A stretch of 55,424 nt of DNA, counting the filler, from Trichosphaerium sp. ATCC 40318 (Eukaryota > Protista > Tubulinea), in the NCBI GenBank assembly GCA_038496445.1. It is 3 parts of 3 records of this genome, joined end to end, with 100 filler letters (N's around TTAATTAATTAA, not from the genome) between each part and the next. Parts side by side here need not be neighbours in the genome. Positions count along the whole stretch, not along the records: positions 34,156 to 55,424 come from JALMLS010000286.1; 2 more parts are not named here. One strand, written 5' to 3'. The notes under the pieces were generated by a model that searched no databases, was not told where the DNA came from, and saw nothing but the letters and a program-made list of their open reading frames with translations. Each line of letters starts with the position of its first letter. Within the stretch, counting starts at the first letter, position 1. Below, in pieces: positions 34,475-55,424 of this stretch. The translations under genes were made by a program, and so were the position numbers.

Positions 34475-37126
34475 TACCTGGTTGAGCCTGCCAGGAGTGA
34501 TAAGCTTTCTCGAAGGATTAAGCCATGCAAGCTCAGCAAAGAGGTATCCTCGGAGCCGCAAACGGCTCCTTAAAACGGTCGTAACCCACCCGACAAGACT
34601 AATAATGGTCACGTCATTTTGCACACAGGAACTTGTTTCCTAAACGCACTATAACCAAAACTCGTGGCCTCCCCGCGGATAACCGGGATTAAAGGAAACC
34701 TGCGGCTAATACGTAATGCGCCTAGCGCTGCCGATGGGCCCCTCTGCTGCAAGGACCCATCGGTCGCATCCAACGCTCAGGAGCGGACGATCACCCGATC
34801 CCATCTTGGTTCGCCAAGGGAAGCAGCCTCCCTTAGGAAGCGGCGTCCGTACTCCGTCGGGAAGAGCGGCGTTGGGGCATGCGATGGAGTTATGAGGAGT
34901 TCTCTCTAACTAGACATGTTTCAAAAACAATGTTAAAGCTACACACAAGTGAAAATTAGGTGAAAGAAAAATGAACATTGTTTCAAATCTGATCCTTCGC
35001 TGAATGTGTGCTTTTTCATAAAGATCATATCGATATAAAGTTGAGAGTTCTCCCCCTCCACGAGTCGGAAGGGCGGCCGACCTATCAGCCAGGCGGTAGG
35101 GTAACGGCCTACCGCGGCAGTGACGGGTAACGGGGAACTAGGGTTCGGTTCCCGGAGAAGGGGCATTAGATACGGCCCCTGTACTTACGGGTAACAGCAG
35201 GCGCGTAACTTGGCCATTGATTGCAAATCGAGCCAGCGACTGAGTGTAACGAGGCCGGCATTTAAACCGGTCGTCGCAATGAGGGGCAACTGAATGTCGC
35301 CCTGAGAAACTATTGGAGGACAAGTTGGGTGCCAGCACCCGCGGTAACACCCACTCCGAAAGCTTATACTTTTGCTGTTGCTGTTAAAGCGCTCGCAGTC
35401 CAAACAACGACACAGCTGAGAGGGACAAGGTTTAGATAGGAGTTTACTCCTTGACAAAACCCCCCGACTCTTTTTCATCGCCCGACCAGGCATAAATGGC
35501 TTCGCTCAAACGCAAGGTCAGTTTAGGCTTCGGCCGCTATGCCACCCACCAGCATCCTGGAATTGGGCTTTAAAAAAAACAAAAACAACACTTTACCAAG
35601 TGCGACGCTCAAGTCTCATTTTTTTACTAAGTATGAACAATATCCTAAGATGCAAGTCAGAGTGAAAACTCATGTTCTTCATTAAGGGAATAAAAACATT
35701 GTGAACTACAAAAAAGTATTTTTTGAGATAAACTTGAGTTAGTCTTCACACTAATAAAGAACACACGATTACTAGGTGCGTACGGGGTAGAGAGTGTGGT
35801 ATCAGCGAGGAGTGAAATCTTTTGACCTGATCCAAACTACCCGAAGCGAAGGCGCTCTGCAAGGGCGTGGCCGGTGATCTAGAACGATGGTGGAGGGAGC
35901 GAAGCGGATTAGAGACCCGTGTAGTCTCCACAGTAAACGATGCCGACTGAATGGGCGCCGGGCAAACCAAGGCTCGGGGCCCGTTCCCACGGGAAACCGA
36001 AGTAATCGGGCCCAGGGGGGAAGTATGGTCGCAAGGCTGAAACTTAAAGGCATTGACGGAGCAACACCACCAGGCTCTGGAGGCTGCGGCTCAATTTGAC
36101 TCAACGCGCGACAACTTACCGGGATCGGACGCTCTAAGGGGACGAACAGACTGAAGGGTCTTTTCCGAGTTAGCTAACGGTGGTGCATGGTCGTTTTAGG
36201 CTCGTGGACTTATCTGTCAGGTTTATTCCGATAACGGGCGAGATCGCTACTGTCACATTGATCCCCCGCCTCGTGCGGGACCCCTGTGCAGGACTGACGG
36301 CGAAAAGTCGTAAGAAGCGGCGGCTATAACAGATCCGGGATGCCCCCAGATATTCCGGGCCGCACGCGGCCTACACTGCTTAGTTCAACGGGTTCCTGGG
36401 CCGAACAGGCATCCGGGCAAGCCCTGAAACCGCCAGAACACTTCTTCACGACAGCGAGTTAAACCTCAGATTTAATTATCTAAATACGACTACACTTAAA
36501 CGCACCTTCGGAAACTACCACCTTCAAAAAACAAGTCTGTCCTGAACCTAATATAAAGAGTTAACCCCCTCGTCGAGGCTTTTTAGGAAGTTAAATTCCT
36601 TTAATGTTAAGACGAGAAGCGCTGTTAGATGAAAACTTACATCTTTGGACTTTGTTCCTTAGTGTAAACATTGAAAGAGCTGTGGATCGTTTCAATTAAC
36701 AAATAAGGTTTCTTCTTCACTTAAATGCTTTGACTTGGAAGATTATATCTTTACCAAGGCAAACTTTATTATGAAGTAAGTTTCTGCAATGTTCATAAAA
36801 AAATACATGAAAGCGCACCGTGTGGTCGATTTGGATGTTAAGTGTGCTCAATGCTGCTTCTCCGAAAAGACACATGCGTGCTTAGGGACTGGTTGCTGTA
36901 ACTGTAGCCACGAACGCGGAATGCCTCGTACAGGTGTGTCATCAACGCACCTGGAATCTGTCCCTGTTGCTTGTACACACCGCCCGTCGCATCGACCGAT
37001 GTGGGTGCGAGTGAGACCAGGGGGGACGACCGGCTTGCCGGTTATCGAACCTGCTCGAACTTGCGCTCATAAAGGATGATGAAGTCGTAACAAGGTTTCA
37101 GTAGGTGAACCTGCTGAAGGATCAAT
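34475..37126 (+). rRNA. 18S (SSU) rRNA, highly divergent and expanded (about 2.65 kb)
   Basis: TACCTGGTTGAGCCTGCCAG start, GATTAAGCCATGCAAG, GTGCCAGCACCCGCGGTAA, GGCTGAAACTTAAAGGCATTGACGG, TTGTACACACCGCCCGTC, GAAGTCGTAACAAGGTTTCAGTAGGTGAACCTGCTGAAGGATCA end. Confidence 0.97.
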
Positions 37127-37361
37127 ACTATTGGTATTTAACCCTTAGAAGCAATTAAACCAACTTTTAACCAAGTTTAAAAGAAATTGGAGTATCAGTT
37201 TTGGTCTGGCAAGTCCAAGCTTACTTCGGTAAGTGAAGATATAGCCTCCTCTACTGTGGTGATATCTTGTATATCTGCCAGCTCCACAACCGCCTATTTT
37301 GGCAAACCAAAACACAGTCGTGGCACGACTATAAAGAACGTCAAGATTTTCGAAAGAAACC

Positions 37362-37527
37362 AAACCTTGTCGGTGAACGGTTAGGCACCTCCCCCGAAGA
37401 AGGCCATGGATCACTATGAAACCAGCCACCGGAATCGCTCTCATCTGAAGGTGGCATTGCCGAATGCCTCAGGCCGCGTTCTGTATTCTCACGAATCACA
37501 GGCAAAGGAGCGTGACTCAGCGACGCC
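37362..37527 (+). rRNA. 5.8S rRNA (divergent)
   Basis: GC-rich block of about 165 nt between AT-rich ITS1 and ITS2; AACCTTGTCGGTGAACGGTTAGGC..CGAAGAAGGCCA corresponds to the canonical 5.8S 5' part ending CGATGAAGAACGCA. Confidence 0.78.
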
Positions 37528-37723
37528 AGCAAAACAAACACTAAATTTATTTGGTGCTGCGTATGGTGTACACACTTAATCTTCTAAAAAAAGAAAGTGG
37601 TTGCCACAACTAATTAATAAATTGCCGGAAGTGATGTTCCTCCAGAACTCATGCCTAGCTTACTTAAGCGAAGCTTCAGAGGGAAGGTTGGTTCTATATA
37701 CAGAAAGCATTAAAAACCACAAC

Positions 37724-40344
37724 TTGCGTCCTGAGTTACACTTGGCGACCTGCCTAAGTTAAGCATATCATTGGGGCAGAGGAAAGGAAACCAAAAGGGA
37801 CTCCCTGAGTAGCGGCGAGCGAAAGGGGACAAGCTCAAGCCTGAATCCGAGCCTAGCATCGGAGTTGTGGGCTAAGGCGTGGTGGCTCTTCCAGACGTTG
37901 ACGGGAATTACGCACGAGTCGTAGCCGTAGAGGGTGCGAGCCCCGTACGCTGTCAACTGAGGAAATAGAGTCCCATCGTCCAGGAGTAGTATGGTTTGGC
38001 CGTGCCATACGAAGTTACCGGGAGGTTACCCGGCAAGGCTAAGTATCGGGAGGTGGCCGATAGCGCACCAGTACCGTGAGGGAAGACTGAAACAGCACTC
38101 CTCGATAGAGGGTTAAAAGACCCGAAGCCGGCAAGGGTACAAATGGCACGGAGTACGTAGGTGCCCTGCACCTAATCTGCACATGGCAGACGCTCTTGTA
38201 GCGAGGGAAAAGCGACCGGGGCCTTGTGCCCTGGAAGATTATAATGAAACAAAACGTCGAGGGGAAGGTAACATAGAAGTGACTAACACAAAAAAGTCAT
38301 ACTGGCTAATTGTGCTGTCCACACCATCCTACAAGCTGAAAAGCATAAAAACGTGGGTTTGGTTGAAAGGACATCAAAAAGCACTTTTAAACCTTTAAAT
38401 GATGTTGGTTCACTGAAATTACTGGAACCTCCGAATGTACGTCTTCTTCCGAAAGGAACGAAGCTCGTCATTCATCGTCCACAACCTCAATGAGGCTCTA
38501 TGCCCTTATTGGGCCATGGCCTCCGTGTATCCCGTCTTGAAACACGGATCAAGGAGTTCGCCGAGCGTGCGAGGGTGAGAGATCAAACCTCCAACCCGCA
38601 CAGAAATGAAGCCAAGGATAAGCTCCTAGGCCGTCAAGTTCTTTATAAAAAAAACAAACGTATTACATTTTACATGTTTAAGTTTGCAAAGATCGACATA
38701 AAAAACCGACTATGCTATTATCATGTTTTTATGTTACGCAAGTAATTAAAAACACGTCATACCGAAGTAGATACACTTTGCCATCTCCGGCGTTGTTCTC
38801 TTGGCAGGCGATAGTACGTTGGGCGATACCCGAAAGGTAGCGATCTATACCCGAAAAGGGGGAAGGCGGGAGAAATCCCGCTGGACGCCCGTAGCGTTGC
38901 TGACGTGCAAATCGCTCGCCGGACATTGGGTATAGGGGCGAGAGACCAAACGAGCTGCCAACGTAGCTGGTACCGTTCGAAGTATCCCTAAGGATAGAGG
39001 GGGTCCGTGACGCCGGTCTCGTCTCGTAGAGCCACTGGAAAGAGGTATCGGAGGCCAAAGTTGCCATCGACCTATTATCAAACACATAAGAGGCGACCGA
39101 CCACAGGCCGAATGGCTGTGGTCACCGAGACGGTGGACCCCTATTGGGCCGGTCTTGATAAGCAGGACTGACGAGACGGTTTTAAACGCGAGCAGCAGCA
39201 AAGGCGCCCGAATAGGCAGTAACCAAGACAACGAAGGCGGTGTTCCAGTTTAGACAGCTGGAAGGTGGACATGGAAGTCGTCATCCTCTAAGGAGTGAGT
39301 AACTTCTCACCAGCCGAATTGGGACGCGCCGAAAATGGATGGCGCTAAACTGCCTTAGCCGCCGCTGCGCGATCGCCCCGGCTCGGCCCAGGGTGCGGTA
39401 GGACGGCGTGCTGGTGGCGTAGAAGGGGGGCGGTGGCGTCCACCCGGAGCCACCAGCAGTGATGATCTTGGTGGTAGTAGCAATTGGAGCCTGGTGAAAC
39501 AGTGTTTATCACAGCCAGGTCGCCCAAGTGGGGAAGGGTTTCGCGGTGATGGCATTCAGCTGCGAGTTAGCCGGTCCTAAGCCAGCTCCTAATAGAGTAT
39601 ACTGTTTGATGCTGGCAGACGACACTAAGTTTTGATAGACTTTCACAAGTCTTGAAATTGGTGGAAGTCTGCGATGCTTTCAACTCGGCGAAAGGCAACC
39701 TGGTGAGTAATCCAGGGCATGGGTAAGGAGGATGCATTTGCTTTAGAAGTGGCAACACTGAGAGAGAGAGCGCACGCGAGCAACCACACTTCTGCGGGGC
39801 CTTCTCCCGCGCCTAAGCTATTCGAGGGAAACTCCCCGGAGCCACGTAAAGCGGCGAAGGGAAAGAGTCGAGGGTAGCTAATGGGAAAGCACTTTTGCTT
39901 TCTAGGGGTGTTGGTGAGCTCGTTCTCACGAGGCTGCTCCTCTCCGAAGCCGACATTTTCGGATGTTCAGTGTCCTCCAGGCTCATACCGTACCGAAAAC
40001 CGCATCAGGTCCCCTAGGTTAGTCACCTCTGGCGCTGCACGGTGTAAACGGCGTAAGGGAAGTCGGCATACGCGGCCCGTAACTTCGGGAAAAGGGCTGG
40101 CTCTGCTGACCGGGACCCGGGACGACGTGCGTCTGCGCTACTTCAGTGTAGCCCCTTCGGGAATGGCGCACAGTCCCTGCAAAGAGGTCCACAAGCGGAT
40201 CATGGCGGAACTCTCAGAAGCTTAGAGAACCCAACTGTTTACTTAAAACTTAGCCCTTTGATACCTCCTCTGAGGTCTGACAAAGGGTGACTCCTGCCCA
40301 GTGCTTTGAAAGTTGCGGTGCTTAATTTCACCCAAGCACGGGTT

Positions 40345-40394
<50 letters not shown>

Positions 40395-41111
40395 GTAACT
40401 AATGACGCGCATGAATGGATGAATGAGGTTCTCGCTGTCCCTACGCCGACCGTGGCGAAACCACAGAGTCGCGAACGGGCGACTTTTCTACCAGCGGGGA
40501 AAGAAGACCCTGTTGAGTTTGACTCTCACCACGCTTAGGGGCTTGGCACTGGAGGTATAGGGTAGGAAGTAGTTTTTTACGAAAGGTGTAACACTTCTAC
40601 TCCGGAGGTCGGGCCCCAGACGCATTCAAAACGGGCGAAAGCGCCTGCCTCTTCGGAGGACGTGGCGCTGCTCGAACCATACAAGTCGGTTCTTAGGATG
40701 AGGCGGGCCCAATCGAAAGTGCGGATTACCTTCCAATTTCGGAACTTTGACAAGCATTAAGGCGGACAGCGCGTGGCCGGGAGTTTGGCTGGGGCGGCAC
40801 ATCCGCTATAGGGTAACACGGATGACCTAAGGGGAGCTCAGTGGGGACAGAAACCCCACGTAGAGGCCAAGGCTAAAAGCCCCCTTGAGCAAGAGTGGAG
40901 CCATCGCTCTTGCACCCTAACGGGAGGCCTAGAGATCCCTCGTGACTAGTCATGTAACCTGACACTGGGGTGACAGAAAAATTACCATAGGGATAACTGG
41001 CTTGTGGTCGCCAAGCGCTCAGAGCGACGCGACTTTTTGATTCTTCGATGTCGGCTCTTCCTATCCAGGTGTAGCAGAATGCTCCAAGGGTTGGATTGTT
41101 CACCCACTTAC

Positions 41112-41155
<44 letters not shown>

Positions 41156-41553
41156 TTACCCTACTGGTGGGCCTATTTTATTAACATGCGCGTCGTCGGT
41201 AGCGATGCCTCAGTACGAGAGGAACGGGCATCGGTGGCCTCTAGTGTCCGCGGACGTCCGAGAGGGCGGTTCGCGAAGCCACGCCATTGGGAGTACGGCT
41301 GAAGGCCTCTAAAGTCGGAAACCCAGCCGCCAAGAGCCGCGCGGCGACATTGTCGTTGCTGCGCCTCCTCGAACGAAAGGCTTCGGCCCGCAAAGGTTCT
41401 ACACTATGGCACAAGTAGCACGTCTTAGCAAACGCCCGCAGGGGCCCCGTAAACCACGGGAACTCGAACAGGGTCTTAGGGCATTTACTGTTGTAAGCTA
41501 GGGAGTCGCTCAAGCCTTCGGGTGCGACGACCTGCTGAGGCAGAGGCCCGACT
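37724..41553 (+). rRNA. 28S (LSU) rRNA, divergent
   Basis: TTAAGCATATCA, CCCGTCTTGAAACACGGA, GGGAGTAACTATGACTCTCTTAAGGTAGCCAAATGCCTCGTC, GGGATAACTGGCTTGTGG, GAGCTGGGTTTAGACCGTCGTGAGACAGGTT, sarcin-ricin loop CTCAGTACGAGAGGAAC; ends approximate. Confidence 0.97.
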
Positions 41554-42494
41554 AAATTGTATTCTGATATCTTCAATGTATTCATTCTTGTCCCTTTTCA
41601 TCTTCGTGCCCCTCCGTGTGTTGACATGTGATTTTTTATCTACACAAAAGAAAACAATAGCTAACCATGTCATATATTTTTTGACAATACCACCTGCTAT
41701 TGTAGCATCCTGTAGATAACAACCATTAGTAATACTACAACCACACAAAATACAACATACCTCTTTGAATTTATTCCAAAACTGCTTTTCCTCCAAACAA
41801 GTTGTTAAATCCTTACTAAACTGGATACACCAAGCATATATCCTGTGAAGGGACACGCTTTTTCTGGTGGAGGGACACGCACTTAATGACACCATATTTT
41901 CACGTCTATATACTTAAACATGCTATAAAGTTAGCCACATATCTACCGTCTATACTTCTCTATATATGCGTATTGAGGGTTAATCAAAATGATTGGGGTG
42001 CTCGCTAGAGCTTTTTTTTGCAAAGTTAAAATTTTCGATGAGTCAACTTCAAGTGTATGTTGTGGGCCATCTGAATAATGTTTTTTTTTTGGTGTACCAT
42101 ATACACTTTATAAGACCATGTTTGATGTGTTTAAAAGGTCTTCAGTTAAAAAATATATAGAGGGTCACTTGGGAACAAGGTTTCAAATAGGTGGAAAAGC
42201 ACTTTTTTGACACGTTTTTCACCACTTGTACTAATATGTAATTAAATGATAGACGTCTAGGTTTGTTATCATTTATCACTGCTATAACATACATGATGGG
42301 TAGCAGAAAAAATACTTGTGCAAAGCAGGAATAGTACTGTAAAAATCATGTTTTGGCATGTTTTTTTTCTTCTCTGTGACACCACCAAATTTAACAAAAG
42401 TGCTTGACTAAATGGTGAGTGTATAAAATAAACATTTAAATACCAAAAAAGTTTATTAAAGCTCAAAAATACATGTTTTTGGAGCATCACATCA

Positions 42495-45327
42495 TTAAAG
42501 CTGTATTATCAATCTTTTTACAAAAACAGGTAAATCTACTTTTTTTCCATTAAGCTCTTGAAAAGCTACCCAAGCATTAATAAGAGTGGTTTTCAATAGA
42601 GCCCATATGTAATAGCTTTTCCTTTTTTTTTTTTAGAACAAGAGGCAGCGCGCTAGCGCCTACTTTATTACATATAGGGGGGTTTACATGGAAGACGACT
42701 TACAGATTGACATGCGTGTACAGAAAGTTACAGGAGGACATCATGTCATGGAACAGAACCAATCGTACAGATGAGAATAAAACTTGTTGTCCGGCATATG
42801 CGTATGTTCTATTAATGGTCAGCAATTTGATTATGGTTCTGAGGTTAACGGTTTTCATGGACAATTTGTTGCTATCCGTTTAATTACTGTATTGCTCAAG
42901 TGCATATAGAAATGGTCCAGTCTCAGCTAAAAAAGAAATGTTCCTCATAGCAAAGCTATCTACACTTGTGGAAACATATTCATTGCGCACGTGATTATAC
43001 GAAAAGGAAGTACCAAAAAAAAAAAAAAAAATTATTTCAAAAATCTGACCTTGCTATCTTCATTGACATCTAGTTTCATTACCTGCTAATAATGTTTGAG
43101 TTACAAGCATGTTCAATGGCCATAGACGTAGAAATAGTGAGGTGTTCCTTTAGGAAGTTAGTTTGTTGCTAAAAAGCGGTGAGAAAGGTAAAATCGAGTT
43201 AGTGTAGTTGATTTTAGCGTGTAAAAGCAGAATAGAGAATTAAATCAGATTACCAACGAAATACAAAAGAAAGGCCAGCGGTGTGACTAAAAGTACTTTA
43301 GCATGTCAAACAGAGCTATAACATTAAACTGTGCGCAGTAGTGCTTTGGTCCCGTCATGGGCGTAAAGGGCTCTGGAGAGTGTAGAGATAACCTAAAGGT
43401 GTAAAATAAAAGATATGCTGAAGAGAAGCTGCATTCACCGGGCAGTTAAGCCGGCCTCATATGTAATAGCTTTTCCATGATCGTTCAGCATGATTATATG
43501 TGATTTTGTACCACAATGAGTCGAAATCATCCACAGCAGCAAATTGTTCTTTGTAAGTGGTAATGAATGGTGGAATTCTGGCTTTCTTAACATTTTGAGT
43601 GGGCTTTAAAAACTTAGCAGCATCTCGAAGATCTTTTTCTTTTTGGTTTTGTGGTTCATGACTATGAGTACGCTTCATGATTCGTTCAATTAGCTTTTGT
43701 TTTTTACCTCCAAGTTTTATTCCATACTGTCTGCATAAATCTCTTAATTGTGACACTTTCAACTCTCTAAGATCTTCTTCAGAGTGTTGTGGTAGTTCAA
43801 TATCAGGGATTGATATTGAATGAATGACAGAAGAAGCTGATAAGTTATGTCCCGTTATTTGTTGGATAATATGTCTTTTTCCCCCTTCTGGTGAAATAGA
43901 CATTTGCATTGCAATTGCTTTTAAATCACGTACATCAAACTCTTCAAAAAGAGTTGCTGCTTTTCTGCTAATAACAGCTGTTTTGGATGCTTTAACAGGA
44001 GTCTTTGAGTTTGAAAATCCAGTAGACAACACACACACCTACAAAACGTCAACAGTAGACAGCGCAATATACATACTTGGTCATTATCATTGTAAAAGCC
44101 AGCCAACATATTTGTTTTAATATTTTTAAAAACACGCCAATCTCCATGCCCAGAACCCCGTTTAATAAAACTCCAAAAATTTTTGGGCCTAAACTTGCTG
44201 CATGCAAGTGTACATGTAATGTTGAGCATATTCAAATTAGCTGCTAAGTCAAACTGTCCAAAAGCAGAATCTCCTATAATATGAGGTTCAAACCCATGGT
44301 TAGCCTCTTTCCATCTTAGTGAAAAGCGTTGAACCACAGCAATAGGAGCAGGTTGAGGAGTTTTAATGTATGGTTCCACATCAATGACATATGGCAAGTC
44401 AGTATGTTTTCCACGAACAACAAACAAATAGTTCACCAAACCATCTGTGTGAGGTTTTTGGGGCAGATGCAGTTTGACAAAACAGCTACCATCAAAAGCA
44501 TAGAGGGCTTCATCCACCACAACAAAAGTACCTACAATGTGGTTACCATTTAGATAAATAAACAACCAAACCTGGCTTTAATGCAAGACTCCATGTACTT
44601 CTGAGTATTCCAATAAACGTTGACCAATTACAACACAAGTGGTTATTAATAACTGAAAAACGTTTTTTCTCCAAAGGCATATCAATAGTTTCTTGTTTTT
44701 TGTAGTACCTACTAAGGTAAGTTGTTGTCTAATTGAACCACAGTACCAAGAAATATCTTTTTTTTGTTCTAAATAAGCCATTGATAATTTTTGCTTGAAC
44801 CACAGTATTAAATCTGCACGAGTAACTGGTTTGTTACGTCGATTTAAATCAGATAACTTGTTATTGTTCTTTAGCTTGGAAATTGTGTAATTTGTTGATT
44901 GCACCAGGTGATTCCACAACCTTGTTGGAGCATGCTGCATTGCAAACATGTTAGGGAAAAAACACAGTTAAATAACAAAAATGATTGATTTATTATGTAC
45001 TTTTTCAAATACATCTTTTTCTGTTGCATTTCTCCCTCCCAAATACCTAACGTTGACTTCTGCAAAGTGGAGGGTGTCTTTAACACTTAATACAGCGTCA
45101 TTTGTAATATTTTCCCATCCTTCCCCTTTAATACGGGCAAACCCCTCTAAAACACTTACATATTATCAGTATATGCGTAGAAATACAAAAAAACACCTCA
45201 ATTCTGCTTTTCCGTCTTTTTTAGCTTTTTTTATTTTCCGAATTTTTTCTTTTGTAACTTCCACCTCTCGCTTTCTTTTTTGTGTAAGGTTATGAGATTC
45301 TGCATTTTCACGCAGCAGCTTACTCAT
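42495..45327 (-). pseudogene. Intron-containing piggyBac-family (DDD) transposase with two SAP-like domains, interrupted by a retro-insertion
   Basis: LWNHLVQSTNY, VVVDEALYAFDG..LHLPQKPHTDGL, IIGDSAFG, PPFITTYKEQFAAVDDFD; after removing 42623-43457 plus one duplication copy the frame reads WKSYYIWALLKTTLINAWVAFQELNGKKVDLPVFVKRLIIQL-stop; basic NLS-like N-terminus (QKRKR..KKAKK); start codon inferred. Confidence 0.88.
42623..43457 (-). mobile_element. Non-LTR retro-insertion (SINE-like, truncated LINE or retrocopy), 835 bp
   Basis: Exact 19-bp direct repeat CATATGTAATAGCTTTTCC at 42604-42622 and 43458-43476; T12 tract at 42623-42634 = 3' poly(A) on the minus strand; no long ORF. Confidence 0.9.
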
Positions 45328-46010
45328 AGTATAGTTTAAACATGAATTAGACATAGTTAAGTGTGTCCTCCCACTTAAAAAATTGTGTCCCTTCACGGGA
45401 TATTCAGCCTTGTTCTTTTCTCCACCCAACCCACATTTCATACAGTTCCTTTTATCTTTTATTAAGCCCATCCAATATTAGTTCCCTTAGATACAACAAG
45501 GCCAACAGCTTTCAACCAATACATTAATGTTTATTTTCAAAAAAAATAAGTATTTATTACAATTATAATTATGGAAGCATTTTTTACAGCAAATAAAATA
45601 TTAATAGCCTAAACAGCAATTAAATACTTTAAAAACACCTTGCTACACACAATTGTCTTTTTAGACTCTTTTTTTTTATAATTTGTTTGAATTTCATGTT
45701 CAATGGAATATTTCAACTTAAAGTACTTTATTGAATTTGAAGTGCATCCAAAAACATGTTTTACACTTATACCATGTCATCTTTAGTTATTTCATGTTAC
45801 TCTTAGTAAGGTACATTGTGTTCAGTGGTAAATTTAAATTAGAGTTTTTAAGGAATTTTGTTTAAAAACTAAGAATTTATAAACAGAAAATCTCTTCCTT
45901 TATTCCTATCCAAACAAAATTTCTTAAGGATTAATGTCAAAATTCCATAAAGATTAACAATGAAATTCTCAATGCATTTTTTATGAAACTCCAAACAAAT
46001 TACCTTGAAA

Positions 46011-46738
46011 CAGAGCTAAAACTGGAGTTGGCATTACCTATCAAATGCTGGTATTTGGTTAAAATCAGGCATAATGAAGCATAAAATAGGCATTTCATGG
46101 AGCACAAGTAACAACTGCTTATGAAATGCCTGCATTTTTTTGGCATGGCATTAATCAAGCATTTCAAAACATGCCACCCTTGGCATATATAGGCAATGCC
46201 AAAACCCTTTTAGTTCAATGAAGGGATGTTCATGTTTGTATACTTTAAGGTAGGTTTATAGAAAAAGTACAATCTCCAAACATCAACAGCAAAAAAACCA
46301 CTGAACGAAAATGGCGGTCCTATTTTAAATGGCACGTAGAGCTCTTAGTATTTCATTAATTCTAACGAAACCTAGCTCATTCGAACCGCAGCACCCAAAT
46401 ACACCTGCACATACAGCGAAAGTAAATTACATATAATACACAGGTGATCGAAATCATAACAATACTTTGGAACTTTTTTTTGTAATTATACATTGTTGTA
46501 ACACAGGTATAATACAGGCATAAAATAGGCATTTATAAGGCATCAAACTTGTATTTATTGTGTTGGGCATAAATCAAGCATAATTCAGGTATAATACAGG
46601 CATAAAATAGGCATTTATAAGGCATCAAACTTGTATTTATTTCTTGGCATCTACCAGGCATTTAGCCATAAAAACAGGCATTTAAACAAGCATTTAGTAG
46701 GCATTTGCTTTCAAATGCCAACTCCAGTTTTAGCTCTG
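46011..46738. mobile_element. MITE-like unit 1 with perfect 25-bp TIRs
   Basis: CAGAGCTAAAACTGGAGTTGGCATT (46011-46035) and its exact reverse complement (46714-46738); many AGGCAT/ATGCC subterminal motifs; 56-bp internal direct repeat 46504-46559 / 46586-46641; no clear TSD. Confidence 0.75.
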
Positions 46739-46778
46739 AATACTTTACAATATTTACATCAAGTCTTCCAGCACAAAC

Positions 46779-48498
46779 AAGGCTGAAACTAAACAAGGCT
46801 TTGCCTTAAATATGAAGGCATTTTTTTAAAATCAGGCATTAATGGCAAAAATCAGACATGCAAAGTGGCAATGCCTGATTTTGCAAAGACAATGGCAACA
46901 AAAGCAAAAATCAGGCATTGAAATAAGGCTTTGTTGGGCAATGCCTTAATTGTTGCAATGCCTTGTTTTTTTTAGGCAATGCCTGCCCTAGTTTTTTTAT
47001 GCATTGCCAGCCTTAAATTTACTGGCACCAATTAGGCATTGGTTGTGTACACATTGTACATTAAGGATACATTGGTTTAAGGTAAGTCTCCACCACACCA
47101 ACACTTCCTAAACATTTTTTTTCATTTACTACTGACGTTTTATATAGACGCCGTCACCACGCTTTTAGTATTTTATGGATTCTAACGAAACCACCGCCAT
47201 TCGAACCGCAGCACCCAAATGCACCTACAACAGGAGTATAGGTACCTTAAACCATTTTTCCAGTCCGCGAAAATTATACCAATAATTTGTTAATTTTTTT
47301 TTCTAGCTTAAGGTTTTTTTTCACATGGAGGACATTGAAGTTTTTTGTGTTTTGTGTATTGTACTTTAATAAATGAATCACTATTGTATGTCTATATAAA
47401 GCCTTGTTTTATGAGTATATGGCGCCTGGGTTATGCCCAAAAATTGAGGGCAAAAATGCCTTATTGTTGCACTAAAAATGAGGCATTATTGGACCAACAA
47501 TGCAGGCTATTTTAAGGCTAATTAGTGAATCAGTTGTTTGCTATTTGGCCCAAATATGAGGCTGCAAAGCCCAAAATTACAAGGCAATGCCTCATATTTG
47601 CTCATTTTTTTTGGCAAAAACAAAGCAATTTGGTGAAAAATAAGGCTGTATTTGGTGGCAACAGGGCTGAAACTCAACAAAGCATTTTTGGACAATGCTT
47701 AGGCATTTTCATTCAAATAATGCCTTATTTTTTACAAAAATGCCTAGTTTTTGCCTTATTCAAAAAGGCAAATACAGGGCAATGCCTTATTTTGAAGGCA
47801 AAAAAAAAGCATTATCATAGTCTACAATGCCTAATAAACCAAAGCATTTTCAGGTAATAACACAATTATTTAATTTATAATACAGTACACATACAATACA
47901 CAAAACTCCTAAGTCCACATTTGAAAAAACCTTAAAGACAATATGAGATGGAGGGAAAAAAACAAAAAAAAAAAAAACTTACCTTGTAGTGTTAGAATTC
48001 CGCGGTCCTGGAAATATCGCAAAGTTCACTCCTACTACTGGTATAGGTGAAATAGGGTGCTGCGGTTCGTTTGGCAGTGGTTTCGTCTAATTTCATGAAT
48101 TACTAAGAGCGCTAGGTGCCTGTCTATATAAAACGTCAGTAGGTGATGTGGAAAAAAAGTGTAAAAGTTGTTTGACTGTTACTTACCTTAAACCACTTCC
48201 TTAATGTGATCAGTCCTATGATATAGTATAAGCAATGCCTTATATATGAATTAAAATATAAGGCATATATTGTTTAAAAAAATAAGGCATAATAAAGGCA
48301 TAAAGTACTTGCAATACAGGGCATTACTTGATTTTATGCAATGCCAAAAAATGCAATACAAGGCATTACCTGATTTTATGCAATGCCAAAAGATGTCCAA
48401 AAATGCCTGGTATTAATGCAAGAAATTCCTTATGTTAATGGAATATTGCAAAATATGCATCATTTTTTAAAACAATGTGTAGTTGACTTTCAACTCTG
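46779..48498. repeat. Related units 2 (+, about 46779-47660) and 3 (-, about 47662-48498), mutually inverted
   Basis: Ends resemble unit 1 (CAAGGCTGAAACT, CAGGGCTGAAACTCAAC, GTTGACTTTCAACTCTG); shared core ..TTAGTA..ACGAAACC..CGAACCGCAGCACCC..CACCT at about 46340-46410, 47160-47230 and (reverse) 48045-48110; AGGCA-rich flanks. Confidence 0.75.
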
Positions 48499-49790
48499 TT
48501 AACAGAGTTTTTAATTCGTGATTTGAGTGAAGAATGGAATAGTTTTTTTTTTAAGCAAGAAAACCAATTTGTGACTCAACCGATGTAATCTTCTTCAAGG
48601 TCATATGAGATGACAGTAAGGGACAAGTATTGAATATAACACATGTACCTTTTGATATTAATAAATAATATTTGTACCAAGTTAATGGTTAAAATTACTG
48701 TCTTGTTGTCACTCATTTTTCTTAATGTTAAACAATAACTTTGAATAAAATACACAATGCTATGATAACAACGTCACAGGCTTTATTCAGGGGCAAAAAA
48801 CAAATATAAATTATTTTTGTCCTTTTTTCAAAAACTACACTTTAAAATTTATTTTTTCTTTCTCATATCATCACTTTGTCATCATAACAGCTAAAATGCT
48901 TTTATTTGACCACAATACAGGTGTTTTATCTGTCATGTTGAGTATTTAGATGTTTTAAATTTTATGACAATTGTTATTGTAGGTTTTATAAAATAACAAA
49001 ATTGTAAAAACTAAACCTTCAACAATCCAAACAAAGTTTATTTTCTCAACCATAATATACAATCTGATAAATATGTTCAGTTTCATTGTTTATAAGCATA
49101 TAAATCACCTTTAAGAAAAAAAAAAGCCTGTCAAATCATTTTCTCTGTATACAATGTACTGTTCAGTTTTTAAATGTTATGTGACACTCTTGTGTGACGT
49201 GTCTAATGACTTGATAGACTGATATACACTTTTTAGATAAAGCCATGTAATGCAATTATCAGTATGCTCAGTTTTCATTGCTTACATGTATATATACTCT
49301 TTGTAGTGGTTTGAGTATTACTCACATAATTTTTTACATATTCTCTCAAAAAAATTATTGCATATTTCTTGTAGAATTCACTTAATATTTTAGAAAGACT
49401 TTTTGTGAAAATAACATCAAAATACATTATTTCAATAATTCTGGAAATTCCATATTTTCAAAAATATTATGGTAATTTATCAAAAATCCTGCTGTAAACT
49501 ATAAACATTTTGTGACATGATTTGCTCATACTACACAATGCAAGTAAATGGGTTTGATCACATGGTAAACTATGTCAATTGAAGTTTTGTTCTAAAAATA
49601 TGGCAACACTGAATAGATTTACAAATCAGTTGCTTGTTTTCAGATTTATGCAAACTATTTTGTTTTAAAAACTGGCGGCTAGAATAAAAAAAAAAAGAGT
49701 GTAGATAAAAAATCACATGTCAACACACGGAGGGGCACGAAGATGAAAAGGGACAAGAATGAATACATTGAAGATATCAGAATACAATTT

Positions 49791-50188
49791 AGTCGGGCCT
49801 CTGCCTCAGCAGGTCGTCGCACCCGAAGGCTTGAGCGACTCCCTAGCTTACAACAGTAAATGCCCTAAGACCCTGTTCGAGTTCCCGTGGTTTACGGGGC
49901 CCCTGCGGGCGTTTGCTAAGACGTGCTACTTGTGCCATAGTGTAGAACCTTTGCGGGCCGAAGCCTTTCGTTCGAGGAGGCGCAGCAACGACAATGTCGC
50001 CGCGCGGCTCTTGGCGGCTGGGTTTCCGACTTTAGAGGCCTTCAGCCGTACTCCCAATGGCGTGGCTTCGCGAACCGCCCTCTCGGACGTCCGCGGACAC
50101 TAGAGGCCACCGATGCCCGTTCCTCTCGTACTGAGGCATCGCTACCGACGACGCGCATGTTAATAAAATAGGCCCACCAGTAGGGTAA

Positions 50189-50232
<44 letters not shown>

Positions 50233-50948
50233 GTAAGTGGGTGAACAATCCAACCCTTGGAGCATTCTGCTACACCTGGATAGGAAGAGCCGACATCGAA
50301 GAATCAAAAAGTCGCGTCGCTCTGAGCGCTTGGCGACCACAAGCCAGTTATCCCTATGGTAATTTTTCTGTCACCCCAGTGTCAGGTTACATGACTAGTC
50401 ACGAGGGATCTCTAGGCCTCCCGTTAGGGTGCAAGAGCGATGGCTCCACTCTTGCTCAAGGGGGCTTTTAGCCTTGGCCTCTACGTGGGGTTTCTGTCCC
50501 CACTGAGCTCCCCTTAGGTCATCCGTGTTACCCTATAGCGGATGTGCCGCCCCAGCCAAACTCCCGGCCACGCGCTGTCCGCCTTAATGCTTGTCAAAGT
50601 CCGAAATCGGAAGGTAATCCGCACTTTCGATTGGGCCCGCCTCATCCTAAGAACCGACTTGTATGGTTCGAGCAGCGCCACGTCCTCCGAAGAGGCAGGC
50701 GCTTTCGCCCGTTTTGAATGCGTCTGGGGCCCGACCTCCGGAGTAGAAGTGTTACACCTTTCGTAAAAAACTACTTCCTACCCTATACCTCCAGTGCCAA
50801 GCCCCTAAGCGTGGTGAGAGTCAAACTCAACAGGGTCTTCTTTCCCCGCTGGTAGAAAAGTCGCCCGTTCGCGACTCTGTGGTTTCGCCACGGTCGGCGT
50901 AGGGACAGCGAGAACCTCATTCATCCATTCATGCGCGTCATTAGTTAC

Positions 50949-50998
<50 letters not shown>

Positions 50999-53614
50999 AA
51001 CCCGTGCTTGGGTGAAATTAAGCACCGCAACTTTCAAAGCACTGGGCAGGAGTCACCCTTTGTCAGACCTCAGAGGAGGTATCAAAGGGCTAAGTTTTAA
51101 GTAAACAGTTGGGTTCTCTAAGCTTCTGAGAGTTCCGCCATGATCCGCTTGTGGACCTCTTTGCAGGGACTGTGCGCCATTCCCGAAGGGGCTACACTGA
51201 AGTAGCGCAGACGCACGTCGTCCCGGGTCCCGGTCAGCAGAGCCAGCCCTTTTCCCGAAGTTACGGGCCGCGTATGCCGACTTCCCTTACGCCGTTTACA
51301 CCGTGCAGCGCCAGAGGTGACTAACCTAGGGGACCTGATGCGGTTTTCGGTACGGTATGAGCCTGGAGGACACTGAACACCCGAAAGTGTCGGCTTCGGA
51401 GAGGAGCAGCCTCGTGAGAACGAGCTCACCAACACCCCTAGAAAGCAAAAGTGCTTTCCCATTAGCTACCCTCGACTCTTTCCCTTCGCCGCTTTACGTG
51501 GCTCCGGGGAGTTTCCCTCGAATAGCTTAGGCGCGGGAGAAGGCCCCGCAGAAGTGTGGTTGCTCGCGTGCGCTCTCTCTCTCAGTGTTGCCACTTCTAA
51601 AGCAAATGCATCCTCCTTACCCATGCCCTGGATTACTCACCAGGTTGCCTTTCGCCGAGTTGAAAGCATCGCAGACTTCCACCAGTTTCAGACAGTAAAG
51701 TCTATCAAAACTAGTGTCGTCTGCCAGCATCAAACAGTATACTCTATTAGGAGCTGGCTTAGGACCGGCTAACTCGCAGCTGAATGCCATCACCGCGAAA
51801 CCCTTCCCCACTTGGGCGACCTGGCTGTGATAAACACTGTTTCACCAGGCTCCAATTGCTACTACCACCAAGATCATCACTGCTGGTGGCTCCGGGTGGA
51901 CGCCACCGCCCCCCTTCTACGCCACCAGCACGCCGTCCTACCGCACCCTGGGCCGAGCCGGGGCGATCGCGCAGCGGCGGCTAAGGCAGTTTAGCGCCAT
52001 CCATTTTCGGCGCGTCCCAATTCGGCTGGTGAGAAGTTACTCACTCCTTAGAGGATGACGACTTCCATGTCCACCTTCCAGCTGTCTAAACTGGAACACC
52101 GCCTTCGTTGTCTTGGTTACTGCCTATTCGGGCGCCTTTGCTGCTGCTCGCGTTTAAAACCGTCTCGTCAGTCCTGCTTATCAAGACCGGCCCAATAGGG
52201 GTCCACCGTCTCGGTGACCACAGCCATTCGGCCTGTGGTCGGTCGCCTCTTATGTGTTTGATAATAGGTCGATGGCAACTTTGGCCTCCGATACCTCTTT
52301 CCAGTGGCTCTACGAGACGAGACCGGCGTCACGGACCCCCTCTATCCTTAGGGATACTTCGAACGGTACCAGCTACGTTGGCAGCTCGTTTGGTCTCTCG
52401 CCCCTATACCCAATGTCCGGCGAGCGATTTGCACGTCAGCAACGCTACGGGCGTCCAGCGGGATTTCTCCCGCCTTCCCCCTTTTCGGGTATAGATCGCT
52501 ACCTTTCGGGTATCGCCCAACGTACTATCGCCTGCCAAGAGAACAACGCCGGAGATGGCAAAGTGTATCTACTTCGGTATGACGTGTTTTTAATTACTTG
52601 CGTAACATAAAAACATGATAATAGCATAGTCGGTTTTTTATGTCGATCTTTGCAAACTTATACATGTAAAATGTAATACGTTTGTTTTTTTATAAAGAAC
52701 TTGACGGCCTAGGAGCTTATCCTTGGCTTCATTTCTGTGCGGGTTGGAGGTTTGATCTCTCACCCTCGCACGCTCGGCGAACTCCTTGATCCGTGTTTCA
52801 AGACGGGATACACGGAGGCCATGGCCCAATAAGGGCATAGAGCCTCATTGAGGTTGTGGACGATGAATGACGAGCTTCGTTCCTTTCGGAAGAAGACGTA
52901 CATTCGGAGGTTCCAGTAATTTCAGTGAACCAACATCATTTAAAGGTTTAAAAGTGCTTTTTGATGTCCTTTCAACCAAACCCACGTTTTTATGCTTTTC
53001 AGCTTGTAGGATGGTGTGGACAGCACAATTAGCCAGTATGACTTTTTTGTGTTAGTCACTTCTATGTTACCTTCCCCTCGACGTTTTGTTTCATTATAAT
53101 CTTCCAGGGCACAAGGCCCCGGTCGCTTTTCCCTCGCTACAAGAGCGTCTGCCATGTGCAGATTAGGTGCAGGGCACCTACGTACTCCGTGCCATTTGTA
53201 CCCTTGCCGGCTTCGGGTCTTTTAACCCTCTATCGAGGAGTGCTGTTTCAGTCTTCCCTCACGGTACTGGTGCGCTATCGGCCACCTCCCGATACTTAGC
53301 CTTGCCGGGTAACCTCCCGGTAACTTCGTATGGCACGGCCAAACCATACTACTCCTGGACGATGGGACTCTATTTCCTCGGTTGACAGCGTACGGGGCTC
53401 GCACCCTCTACGGCTACGACTCGTGCGTAATTCCCGTCAACGTCTGGAAGAGCCACCACGCCTTAGCCCACAACTCCGATGCTAGGCTCGGATTCAGGCT
53501 TGAGCTTGTCCCCTTTCGCTCGCCGCTACTCAGGGAGTCCCTTTTGGTTTCCTTTCCTCTGCCCCAATGATATGCTTAACTTAGGCAGGTCGCCAAGTGT
53601 AACTCAGGACGCAA
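49791..53614 (-). rRNA. 28S (LSU) rRNA, second copy
   Basis: Reverse complement of 37724-41553 with a few substitutions and indels. Confidence 0.97.
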
Positions 53615-53810
53615 GTTGTGTTTTTTAATGCTTTCTGTATATAGAACCAACCTTCCCTCTGAAGCTTCGCTTAAGTAAGCTAGGCATGAGTTCTGGAGGA
53701 ACATCACTTCCGGCAATTTATTAATTAGTTGTGGCAACCACTTTCTTTTTTTAGAAGATTAAGTGTGTACACCATACGCAGCACCAAATAAATTTAGTGT
53801 TTGTTTTGCT

Positions 53811-53976
53811 GGCGTCGCTGAGTCACGCTCCTTTGCCTGTGATTCGTGAGAATACAGAACGCGGCCTGAGGCATTCGGCAATGCCACCTTCAGATGAGAG
53901 CGATTCCGGTGGCTGGTTTCATAGTGATCCATGGCCTTCTTCGGGGGAGGTGCCTAACCGTTCACCGACAAGGTTT
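53811..53976 (-). rRNA. 5.8S rRNA, second copy
   Basis: Reverse complement of 37362-37527. Confidence 0.78.
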
Positions 53977-54210
53977 GGTTTCTTTCGAAAATCTTGACGT
54001 TCTTTATAGTCGTGCCACGACTGTGTTTTGGTTTGCCAAAATGGCGGTTGTGGAGCTGGCAGATATACAAGATATCACCACAGCAGAGGATGATATATCT
54101 TCACTTACCGAGGTAAGATTGGATTTACCAAACCAGAGCTGATACTCCAATTTCTTTTAAACTTGGTTAAAAGTTGGTTTAATTGCTTCTAAGGGTTAAA
54201 TACCAATAGT

Positions 54211-55424
54211 ATTGATCCTTCAGCAGGTTCACCTACTGAAACCTTGTTACGACTTCATCATCCTTTATGAGCGCAAGTTCGAGCAGGTTCGATAACCGGC
54301 AAGCCGGTCGTCCCCCCTGGTCTCACTCGCACCCACATCGGTCGATGCGACGGGCGGTGTGTACAAGCAACAGGGACAGATTCCAGGTGCGTTGATGACA
54401 CACCTGTACGAGGCATTCCGCGTTCGTGGCTACAGTTACAGCAACCAGTCCCTAAGCACGCATGTGTCTTTTCGGAGAAGCAGCATTGAGCACACTTAAC
54501 ATCCAAATCGACCACACGGTGCGCTTTCATGTATTTTTTTATGAACATTGCAGAAACTTACTTCATAATAAAGTTTGCCTTGGTAAAGATATAATCTTCC
54601 AAGTCAAAGCATTTAAGTGAAGAAGAAACCTTATTTGTTAATTTGAAACGATCCACAGCTCTTTCAATGTTTACACTAAGGAACAAAGTCCAAAGATGTA
54701 AGTTTTCATCTAACAGCGCTTCTCATCTTAACATTAAAGGAATTTAACTTCCTAAAAAGCCTCGACGAGGGGGTTAACTCTTTATATTAGGTTCAGGACA
54801 GACTTTGTTTTTGAAGGTGGTAGTTTCCGAAGGTGCGTTTAAGTGTAGTCGTATTTAGATAATTAAATCTGAGGTTTAACTCGCTGTCGTGAAGAAGTGT
54901 TCTGGCGGTTTCAGGGCTTGCCCGGATGCCTGTTCGGCCCAGGAACCCGTTGAACTAAGCAGTGTAGGCCGCGTGCGGCCCGGAATATCTGGGGGCATCC
55001 CGGATCTGTTATAGCCGCCGCTTCTTACGACTTTTCGCCGTCAGTCCTGCACAGGGGTCCCGCACGAGGCGGGGGAATCAATGTGACAGTAGCGATCTCG
55101 CCCGTTATCGGAATAAACCTGACAGATAAGTCCACGAGCCTAAAACGACCATGCACCACCGTTAGCTAACTCGGAAAAGACCCTTCAGTCTGTTCGTCCC
55201 CTTAGAGCGTCCGATCCCGGTAAGTTGTCGCGCGTTGAGTCAAATTGAGCCGCAGCCTCCAGAGCCTGGTGGTGTTGCTCCGTCAATGCCTTTAAGTTTC
55301 AGCCTTGCGACCATACTTCCCCCCTGGGCCCGATTACTTCGGTTTCCCGTGGGAACGGGCCCCGAGCCTTGGTTTGCCCGGCGCCCATTCAGTCGGCATC
55401 GTTTACTGTGGAGACTACACGGGT
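54211..55424 (-). rRNA. 18S (SSU) rRNA, second copy, 3' part only (runs off the window)
   Basis: TGATCCTTCAGCAGGTTCACCTAC, GACGGGCGGTGTGTACAA, CCGTCAATGCCTTTAAGTTTCAGCC. Confidence 0.97.

Follow-up and report, generated by a model that had tools for sequence, protein, structure and literature searches.

The window analyzed here is a stretch of 55,424 nucleotides joined from three records of the genome assembly GCA_038496445.1 of the protist Trichosphaerium sp. ATCC 40318. On its minus strand, between two converging ribosomal DNA (rDNA) units, lies a degenerate copy of a cut-and-paste transposon of the piggyBac superfamily. The copy belongs to a divergent piggyBac lineage, encoded mostly in environmental eukaryote assemblies, that keeps the ribonuclease-H-like core with its three catalytic Asp residues (DDD) and the insertion domain, carries SAP in the linker, and lacks the cysteine-rich domain. 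One SAP module is a feature of the whole lineage, and the tandem SAP arrangement of the window is a feature of a sub-branch. We are highly confident of this identity and architecture. The best overall explanation, to which we give a probability of about 0.65, is that the window holds a dead copy from the SAP-carrying piggyBac lineage, with SAP supplying auxiliary DNA binding.

The transposase belongs to the piggyBac superfamily

The frame at 43924-44577, upstream of the SAP region, aligns with the transposase of Trichoplusia ni piggyBac (structure 6x67), with VVVDEALYAFDGSC...LPQKP on LTIDEQLLGFRGRC...IPNKP, which contains D268, and IIGDSAFG on ITCDNWFT, which contains D346. A profile of the family matches 6x67 with an E value of 1e-10 and places ...YkenFNlVDlaDrrW on YYNQTKGGVDTLDQ, the segment containing D447. 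The catalytic Asp triad of the window copy is thereby aligned to D268, D346, and D447 of piggyBac, the last of the three through the family profile. The Pfam domain DDE_Tnp_1_7 is found in the relatives (33.5 bits in the relative P0082, and 25 of 40 alignment rows at E<=0.01) and is carried by 98 of the 100 nearest ESM-Atlas clusters. A hidden Markov model (HMM) built from 26 near-full-length relatives aligned collinearly with five window frames, at model positions 65-140, 141-167, 215-339, 355-492, and 489-515 of 532.

We also used an AlphaFold2 model of P0082, not of the window protein, which had a predicted local distance difference test score (pLDDT) of 89 and a predicted template modeling score of 0.82. 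Its best solved match was 6x67_C (E 1.1e-12, template modeling (TM) scores 0.55/0.65), followed by piggyBat 9c0f (E 1.9e-8) and Tn5. The insertion domain is present in the model as beta-rich strands at residues 314-352. Taken together, the core alignment, the Atlas hits, the collinear HMM, the family profile, and the P0082 model identify a divergent piggyBac-superfamily transposase, as the earlier note on this DNA had proposed.

A SAP domain in the linker to the third catalytic Asp

Both SAP-like modules are encoded in a stop-to-stop frame of 193 amino acids. This frame opens with VCVLSTGF, which forms the final strand of the insertion domain; the modules come after that beta-rich domain, in the linker to the helix of the third Asp. 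The earlier note had placed two SAP peptides at 43679-43948; both are there, as minus-strand translations of 43856-43948 and 43679-43771 in the open frame. It was also right that they lie between the second and third catalytic Asp, the residues aligned to D346 and D447. It had put them where canonical piggyBac transposases have their beta-rich insertion domain, but that domain is kept and the SAP modules follow it rather than replace it.

Module 2 is clearly a SAP domain. It scores 42.2 bits on the Pfam SAP model PF02037 against a cut-off of 23.9 (E 5.7e-11, residues 90-122), with weaker matches to SAP_new25 and Rho_N. Among solved structures, its best match by sequence was the C-terminal SAP of Ku70 (1jjr, E 6.8e-10), followed by the SAP of Tho1, SIZ1, and Hcc-1. 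Structural superposition (Foldseek, VIA-align) agreed with a SAP fold, giving a TM score of 0.75 and a root-mean-square deviation (rmsd) of 1.0 with the Tho1 SAP and an rmsd of 1.6 at 33% identity with the Ku70 SAP. Further structural matches were the Rho N-terminal domain and the SAP of Hcc-1, MKL1, FAN1, SLX4, and DEK.

Module 1, which the earlier note had also called a SAP domain, has no separate match to Pfam and is better described as a divergent, pseudo-SAP-like repeat. We base this on three observations. The profile of its subfamily aligned in register with the module 2 profile (hhalign 94%, E 1.2e-7). Its best solved matches, although weak (E 0.1-0.2), were SAP or SAP-like (Tho1, a rice SAP protein, MANF). 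AlphaFold2 gave both modules of the 193-residue frame the same layout at pLDDT 94-98 (94-96 for module 1), with helices at 25-33, 36-45, and 54-62 in module 1, the last two separated by an 8-residue loop, and at 87-92, 95-104, and 113-125 in module 2. The pattern of module 1 in the tandem subgroup is L..L.....LK.IA...G.S.SG.K....RI.G. The linker between the modules is predicted to be disordered (pLDDT <50 at residues 70-76). In the P0082 model, the pLDDT is 88-96 for module 2 and 46-71 for module 1, and the second helix of module 2 extends, as a helix of 31 residues, in the direction of the third Asp.

SAP is conserved across a lineage lacking the cysteine-rich domain

To collect relatives, an exhaustive HMMER search was run with the 193-residue frame. 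Many proteins gave a single aligned stretch across a SAP module and the third-Asp region, including P0082, P0075, P0046, P0101, P0129, and P0130, and the core frame of the window matches the same proteins (P0075, E 2e-21). Thirty relatives of P0075 all come from metagenome or run assemblies, and their precomputed Pfam matches are DDE_Tnp_1_7, SAP, or both. Two of three word-index homologue searches added little: the A1 profile (see below) returned five matches and region 340-499 of P0130 returned only itself.

Alignment A1 has 40 rows, 37 from relatives and three from window pieces. Its nearly invariant columns include the catalytic D271 and D508 and the SAP consensus residues L432, L440, and K457 (P0082 numbering). 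Similarly, in alignment A4, F166, D170, L90, L98, and K113 (window-frame numbering) are invariant or nearly so. The SAP consensus is thus conserved on a par with the catalytic residues. A Pfam scan of the 40 rows of A1 found DDE_Tnp_1_7 in 25 and SAP in 19 (18 relatives and the window frame). The cysteine-rich zf-Tnp_2 (PF13842) was found in none of the 40, nor did any window frame tested downstream of the third Asp match the cysteine-rich domain. Full-length members stop 60-70 residues past the third Asp, at the position of RLIIQL in the window.

We then counted SAP modules with HMMs built from the two modules in the 54 family sequences that cover the region. All 54 (53 relatives and the window) encode a SAP-like module, and in 53 it lies about 35 residues upstream of the third-Asp motif. 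Two modules are present in only seven: the window, P0018, P0032, P0038, P0052, P0082, and P0130. This count may understate the tandem state, because several of the rows scored as single-module are fragments cut off at the N-terminus. In a tree of the region from module 2 to the C-terminus, the window groups with P0032, P0038, and P0052, all of them tandem (support 86/88). This group falls among the more divergent sequences of the family, which a branch with 97/91 support separates from the rest, and 30 single-module sequences form a well supported clade.

These results bear on several proposals of the earlier note. The lack of a Cys-rich tail held in the window frames tested and in the 37 relatives scanned. 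Environmental relatives share the internal placement of SAP, with a SAP-like module in all 53 that cover the region, but only six of them have the tandem layout it described. The proposed tandem-SAP lineage is a lineage and not a one-off, but what its members share is a single SAP, the tandem being limited to a sub-branch. The protein does end at RLIIQL, where a TAA stop (42495-42497) follows and where the relatives end too, but only once an 835-bp retroposon insertion is removed.

The AlphaFold DB clusters nearest to P0082 are D2W581, A0A151Z4K5, and F0Z8A3, which from their accession series we take to be from Naegleria gruberi and dictyostelids. The alignments of A0A151Z4K5 and F0Z8A3 to P0082 span lengths that include the SAP region.

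The strongest matches to the 193-residue frame were not transposases. P0001 (685 residues), P0002 (1462 residues), P0004, and P0005 each have 5-9 SAP-like stretches and represent multi-SAP repeat proteins in environmental eukaryotes.

Two loci of relatives gave information on their surroundings. At L007 (3409-3480 and 5285-5324), the element of a relative has 33-nt inverted ends starting CCTCGTAAC, followed by repeated subterminal TTTTTATTCTCGTAAAA motifs. One side of it borders TTAA and the opposite side TTGA, next to CCTCG..., and the contig stops 7 nt past the end opposite the TTAA. Inverted ends and target duplications were sought around the relatives at L001, L002, and L003 and not found. 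P0170 (624 residues; L003 1647-3521, with the same gene in L004 and L005) lies between the same two neighboring genes in three assemblies, with intergenic gaps of 56 bp and 291 bp and no inverted ends detected, and may be a fixed or domesticated copy.

Anatomy and decay of the window copy

The element is 3558 bp long, or about 2.72 kb without the retroposon insertion (Table 1). Its inverted ends, 45-47 bp, are imperfect: in a global alignment they are about 80% identical over about 49 nt including the flanking ATAT, which is present on both sides (41838-41841 and 45400-45403). The termini read CCC, the other end carrying a single G>A change, and in this one copy the flanks are ATAT/ATAT and not TTAA.

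Table 1. Features of the window copy and of the rDNA units on either side of it.
Feature	Position	Strand	Basis or remark
Entire piggyBac-like element, CCC... to ...GG terminus	41842-45399	minus	inverted repeat, end alignment, flanks
5' terminal inverted repeat	45355-45399	minus	starts CCCGTGAAGGGACAC; second GGACAC motif 22 bp inward
Putative first exon, MSKLL..., Lys/Glu-rich N-terminus	45197-45327	minus	translation, without homology support
Intron, 66 nt, in-frame GT..AG	44935-45000	minus	precedes main exon
Main exon, N-terminal DNA-binding region and catalytic core	44077-44934	minus	family HMM, alignment to 6x67
First catalytic Asp (VVDEAL)	44512-44514	minus	
Second catalytic Asp (IIGDSAFG)	44269-44271	minus	upstream frame 43924-44577
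Intron, 38 nt, GTATGT...TTGTAG	44039-44076	minus	joins ...NDNDQ to VCVLSTGF
Stop-to-stop frame, 193 residues, both SAP-like modules	43460-44038	minus	starts VCVLSTGF, ends ...AAVDDFDSLWYKITYNHAERSWKSYYI
SAP-like module 1, divergent/pseudo-SAP repeat	43841-43972	minus	residues 23-66 of 193-residue frame
SAP module 2, bona fide	43661-43792	minus	residues 83-126 of 193-residue frame
Third catalytic Asp (AAVDDFD)	43529-43531	minus	D170 column invariant in alignment A4; VD of FNxVD in family profile on D447 of 6x67
Retroposon-like insertion, 835 bp, A12 tail	42623-43457	minus	cuts last exon in two
Coding-sequence end ...KSYYIWALLKTTLINAWV...RLIIQL	42495-42622	minus	stop TAA 42495-42497; family HMM 489-515; C-termini of relatives align
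3' terminal inverted repeat	41842-41888	minus	plus strand reads CCTGTGAAGGGACAC...; two GGGACAC motifs 22 bp apart
Left rDNA unit	small-subunit gene 34475-37127, large-subunit gene 37726-41567	plus	
Right rDNA unit	large-subunit gene 49777-53612, small-subunit gene 54210-55424	minus	

Removal of the 66-nt intron restores the 43-residue spacing that the relatives have between a conserved W and an LW motif, and the 38-nt intron, through a 2-nt change of frame, restores collinearity with the relatives. At the tentative boundary between the putative first exon and the next, an in-frame TGA TAA falls in a possible 42-nt GT..AG interval. Three other gene models were tried and given up. A first, 50-nt model of the first intron gave the wrong frame. 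A 40-nt intron at about 44527-44566 was rejected as the stretch aligns as coding with piggyBac residues 250-270. Reading the in-frame TAA at 44578-44580 as Gln, as in the ciliate code, is not needed because the family HMM runs collinearly in another frame there (position 140 to 141) and the 66-nt intron model restores the spacing of the relatives.

The window copy is inactive, its last exon being split by a poly(A) retroposon and its reading frame broken at least twice. The retroposon is flanked by 19-bp target duplications, exact copies of GGAAAAGCTATTACATATG, at 43458-43476 and 42604-42622. A poly(A) run sits ahead of the second 19-bp copy, and this combination is the signature of a retroposon. 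Excising the 835 bp restores ...SWKSYYIWALLKTTLINAWV..., in agreement with the family. The insertion itself has no open reading frame (ORF) and no Rfam match. Inside it an A17 run in the opposite orientation, at 43010-43031, suggests a nested second insertion. The reading frame of the main exon changes near 44700, within six consecutive A residues (A6), and again near 44575. The family HMM stays collinear across these changes, which are either real frameshifts or homopolymer errors. As the copy is dead, it says nothing about activity.

The element lies in an rDNA spacer

The piece at 34156-55424 consists of two inverted rDNA units arranged tail to tail, and the piggyBac-like copy is on the minus strand of the center between them. 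With ends at 41645 and 49699 and a complementarity of 97-100%, the arms enclose an asymmetric 8-kb center of 26-37% GC, compared with 50-57% GC in the rDNA. Complementarity between the arms (34475-41645 and 49699-55424) is 99-100% except for 36694-37311 against 54026-54643, where it is 97% across the 3' end of the small-subunit (SSU) gene and the first internal transcribed spacer. The converging units may be a real palindromic rDNA junction or a feature of the assembly.

The ribosomal RNAs are divergent. The SSU gene (34475-37127) is 2653 nt long against a model of 1831 positions and scores only 1036 bits, the 5.8S gene at 37362-37525 scores 27.8 bits, under the Rfam cut-off of 42, and the large-subunit (LSU) gene (37726-41567) scores 1728 bits. 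This divergence points to a long-branch protist host.

The remainder of the spacer (45600-49700) is dense in GGCAT/ATGCC-rich repeats. It includes a 42-bp tandem repeat (48310-48395), an 11-bp array (46566-46625), dispersed direct repeats of 60-80 nt (46008/46775, 46341/47161, and 46499/46581), and inverted repeat pairs (47160/48033, 46331/48045, 46011/46701, and 47115/48122). These are candidate spacer promoter, terminator, or replication elements. Rfam gave no signal of a short interspersed element, transfer RNA, or 5S type on the spacer or the retroposon.

Comparison with known systems

The piggyBac elements are a major superfamily of eukaryotic transposons and a widely used genome-engineering tool, and the C-terminal cysteine-rich domain is generally considered necessary for recognizing their ends. 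Like T. ni piggyBac (6x67/6x68) and piggyBat (9c0f), the lineage has the DDD triad in the same motifs (TIDE/VVDE, CDN/GDS, GGVD/AVDD). Its N-terminal DNA-binding region is likewise helical, a beta-rich insertion domain likewise separates the second Asp from the third, and the P0082 fold matches at E 1e-12. The window copy also resembles them in having inverted ends that begin CCC and a 4-bp palindromic A/T flank. However, sequence identity is at most 13%, the lineage is without the C-terminal cysteine-rich domain, and the flank is ATAT instead of TTAA (one copy). T. ni piggyBac has a linker of about 12 residues before D447, whereas 1-2 SAP modules fill about 60-150 residues here.

Module 2 shares with the SAP of Ku70, Tho1, FAN1, and SLX4 the helix-extended loop-helix fold and the consensus L..L...L....G.K..LI.R. 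In those proteins SAP is terminal, but here it is within the catalytic domain and its second helix extends to the active-site Asp. The pseudo-SAP/SAP pair of DEK likewise consists of two successive SAP-type helix-loop-helix units of which the first is divergent, and Foldseek matches to DEK-nucleosome structures cover about 100 aligned columns. The two units are not oriented alike relative to each other, however (rmsd about 19), the linker in the window frame has a disordered prediction, and the resemblance need not mean that the tandem as a unit is homologous.

Domesticated piggyBac proteins (PiggyMac, Tpb2p, PGBD1-5) also combine a piggyBac core with lineage-specific accessory domains, such as SCAN in PGBD1 and a coiled coil in PiggyMac, and PGBD1-like clusters are among the structural neighbors. 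Their accessory domains are terminal, though, and the cysteine-rich domain is mostly kept; the window copy has inverted ends, is decayed, and is not a host gene. An association with rDNA is known from Pokey of Daphnia, a piggyBac-family element tied to rDNA whose target is one particular TTAA within the 28S gene. By this general description Pokey is similar to the window copy in its rDNA association but different in position, as the window copy is in the spacer, 275 bp past the 3' end of the LSU gene.

Full-text searches for literature on piggyBac together with SAP found no paper describing the architecture; what they matched were unrelated applications of piggyBac vectors, or words that begin with "sap". 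One ESM-Atlas cluster is named "Transposase IS4/SAP domain-containing protein" (58 members, DDE_Tnp_1_7 in 100%, SAP in 55%), and a second, with Chlorophyta members, has DDE_Tnp_1_7 in 98% and SAP in 81%. Since automatic annotation labels such clusters, the architecture is already visible in databases. The earlier note would have been contradicted by many previously described piggyBac families of this design; none turned up in the literature searched, although automatic annotation already gives IS4/SAP clusters a name. The architecture is therefore real, conserved, and undescribed in the searchable literature though visible in databases.

Possible roles of SAP

In active members of the lineage, the SAP module would supply the auxiliary binding of double-stranded DNA that the cysteine-rich domain gives canonical piggyBac. 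The substrates would most likely be the paired GGGACAC motifs of the inverted ends, or else AT-rich target or flanking DNA near the active site, with module 2 predicted to be placed rigidly beside the catalytic helix and module 1 to be flexibly tethered. Judged from sequences and models, it is plausible that SAP takes the place of the cysteine-rich domain or directs the choice of target, as the earlier note suggested. We only tentatively propose that the module binds the transposon ends, at somewhat less than even odds, and a protein-protein role appears less probable than either end binding or target tethering. The structural kin of module 2 include the SAP of DNA-end-binding and structure-specific nuclease proteins (Ku70, FAN1, and SLX4), which fits both of the DNA-binding roles. 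A further step, in which these proteins would form a separate mechanistic class of piggyBac whose built-in SAP reads the ends and whose target has shifted or relaxed from TTAA to other A/T tetranucleotides centered on TA, ATAT for instance, seems rather unlikely.

Several points weigh against our explanation. The best window piece, a fragment of a split gene, scores 19.1 bits on DDE_Tnp_1_7, below the cut-off of 22.4; in the HMMER comparison envisaged in the earlier note, SAP passed (42.2 bits, cut-off 23.9). The relatives were retrieved with a query holding SAP and the third-Asp region, which leaves the finding that all members have SAP open to ascertainment bias. Both frame breaks may be homopolymer sequencing errors. 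The ATAT flank was observed once and, being palindromic, could represent a target duplication of 4 bp, like the TTAA of piggyBac, or else belong to the inverted repeat. SAP domains usually have low sequence specificity in DNA binding, which suits tethering to a target or to chromatin no less than it suits recognition of the ends.

A smaller but appreciable chance goes to a mainly tethering role of SAP on chromatin or targets. It would guide integration into DNA that is AT-rich, bent, or matrix-attachment-like, rDNA spacers for example, with the ends read by the N-terminal and core DNA-binding regions alone. The closest structural matches, the SAP of Ku70, Tho1, DEK, FAN1, and SLX4, are generally known to bind DNA with little sequence specificity, and the copy is flanked by ATAT, not TTAA, in a spacer of 31-35% GC beside rDNA of 50-57% GC. 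This is a single insertion site, however, and the relative at L007 has TTAA beside an inverted end. Loss of the cysteine-rich domain also means that some module must have assumed end binding, and the repeated motifs are paired in each end, which is what a dedicated binding module would lead one to expect. Quite improbable is the alternative that domestication has turned many members of the family into host genes, for nucleases or chromatin proteins derived from piggyBac in the manner of the ciliate PiggyMac, with SAP a host-function domain and the window holding a decayed paralogue. P0170 has the same neighbors in three assemblies, short intergenic gaps, and no detected inverted ends, but the three assemblies possibly share one organism or one data set. 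Most of the relatives consist of one ORF without introns on a contig of about 2 kb that is possibly a transcript. By contrast, the window copy is interrupted and retains inverted ends that begin CCC between identical 4-bp flanks, L007 has 33-nt inverted ends with subterminal repeats, and all or nearly all family members keep the catalytic Asp residues. There is next to no likelihood that the SAP-like helices resemble SAP by chance or form a linker peculiar to the lineage and without domain identity. Module 1 alone is under every Pfam threshold, and the best match of its profile to solved SAP is no better than E 0.1. For module 2 the idea is refuted by the Pfam match (E 5.7e-11), the Ku70 matches in sequence and structure, and the Tho1 superposition (rmsd 1.0), and the SAP consensus is nearly invariant in more than 50 relatives.

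Implications for the piggyBac superfamily

The window copy itself matters only as a pointer to the SAP-carrying piggyBac lineage. With a conserved SAP in the catalytic domain and no cysteine-rich domain throughout, that lineage would represent a second solution to DNA recognition within the superfamily. Its environmental assemblies supply intact natural ORFs with which SAP binding and the specificity for ends and targets can be tested. If they do form a separate mechanistic class, SAP-carrying piggyBac transposases would be a natural scaffold with a swappable internal DNA-binding module.

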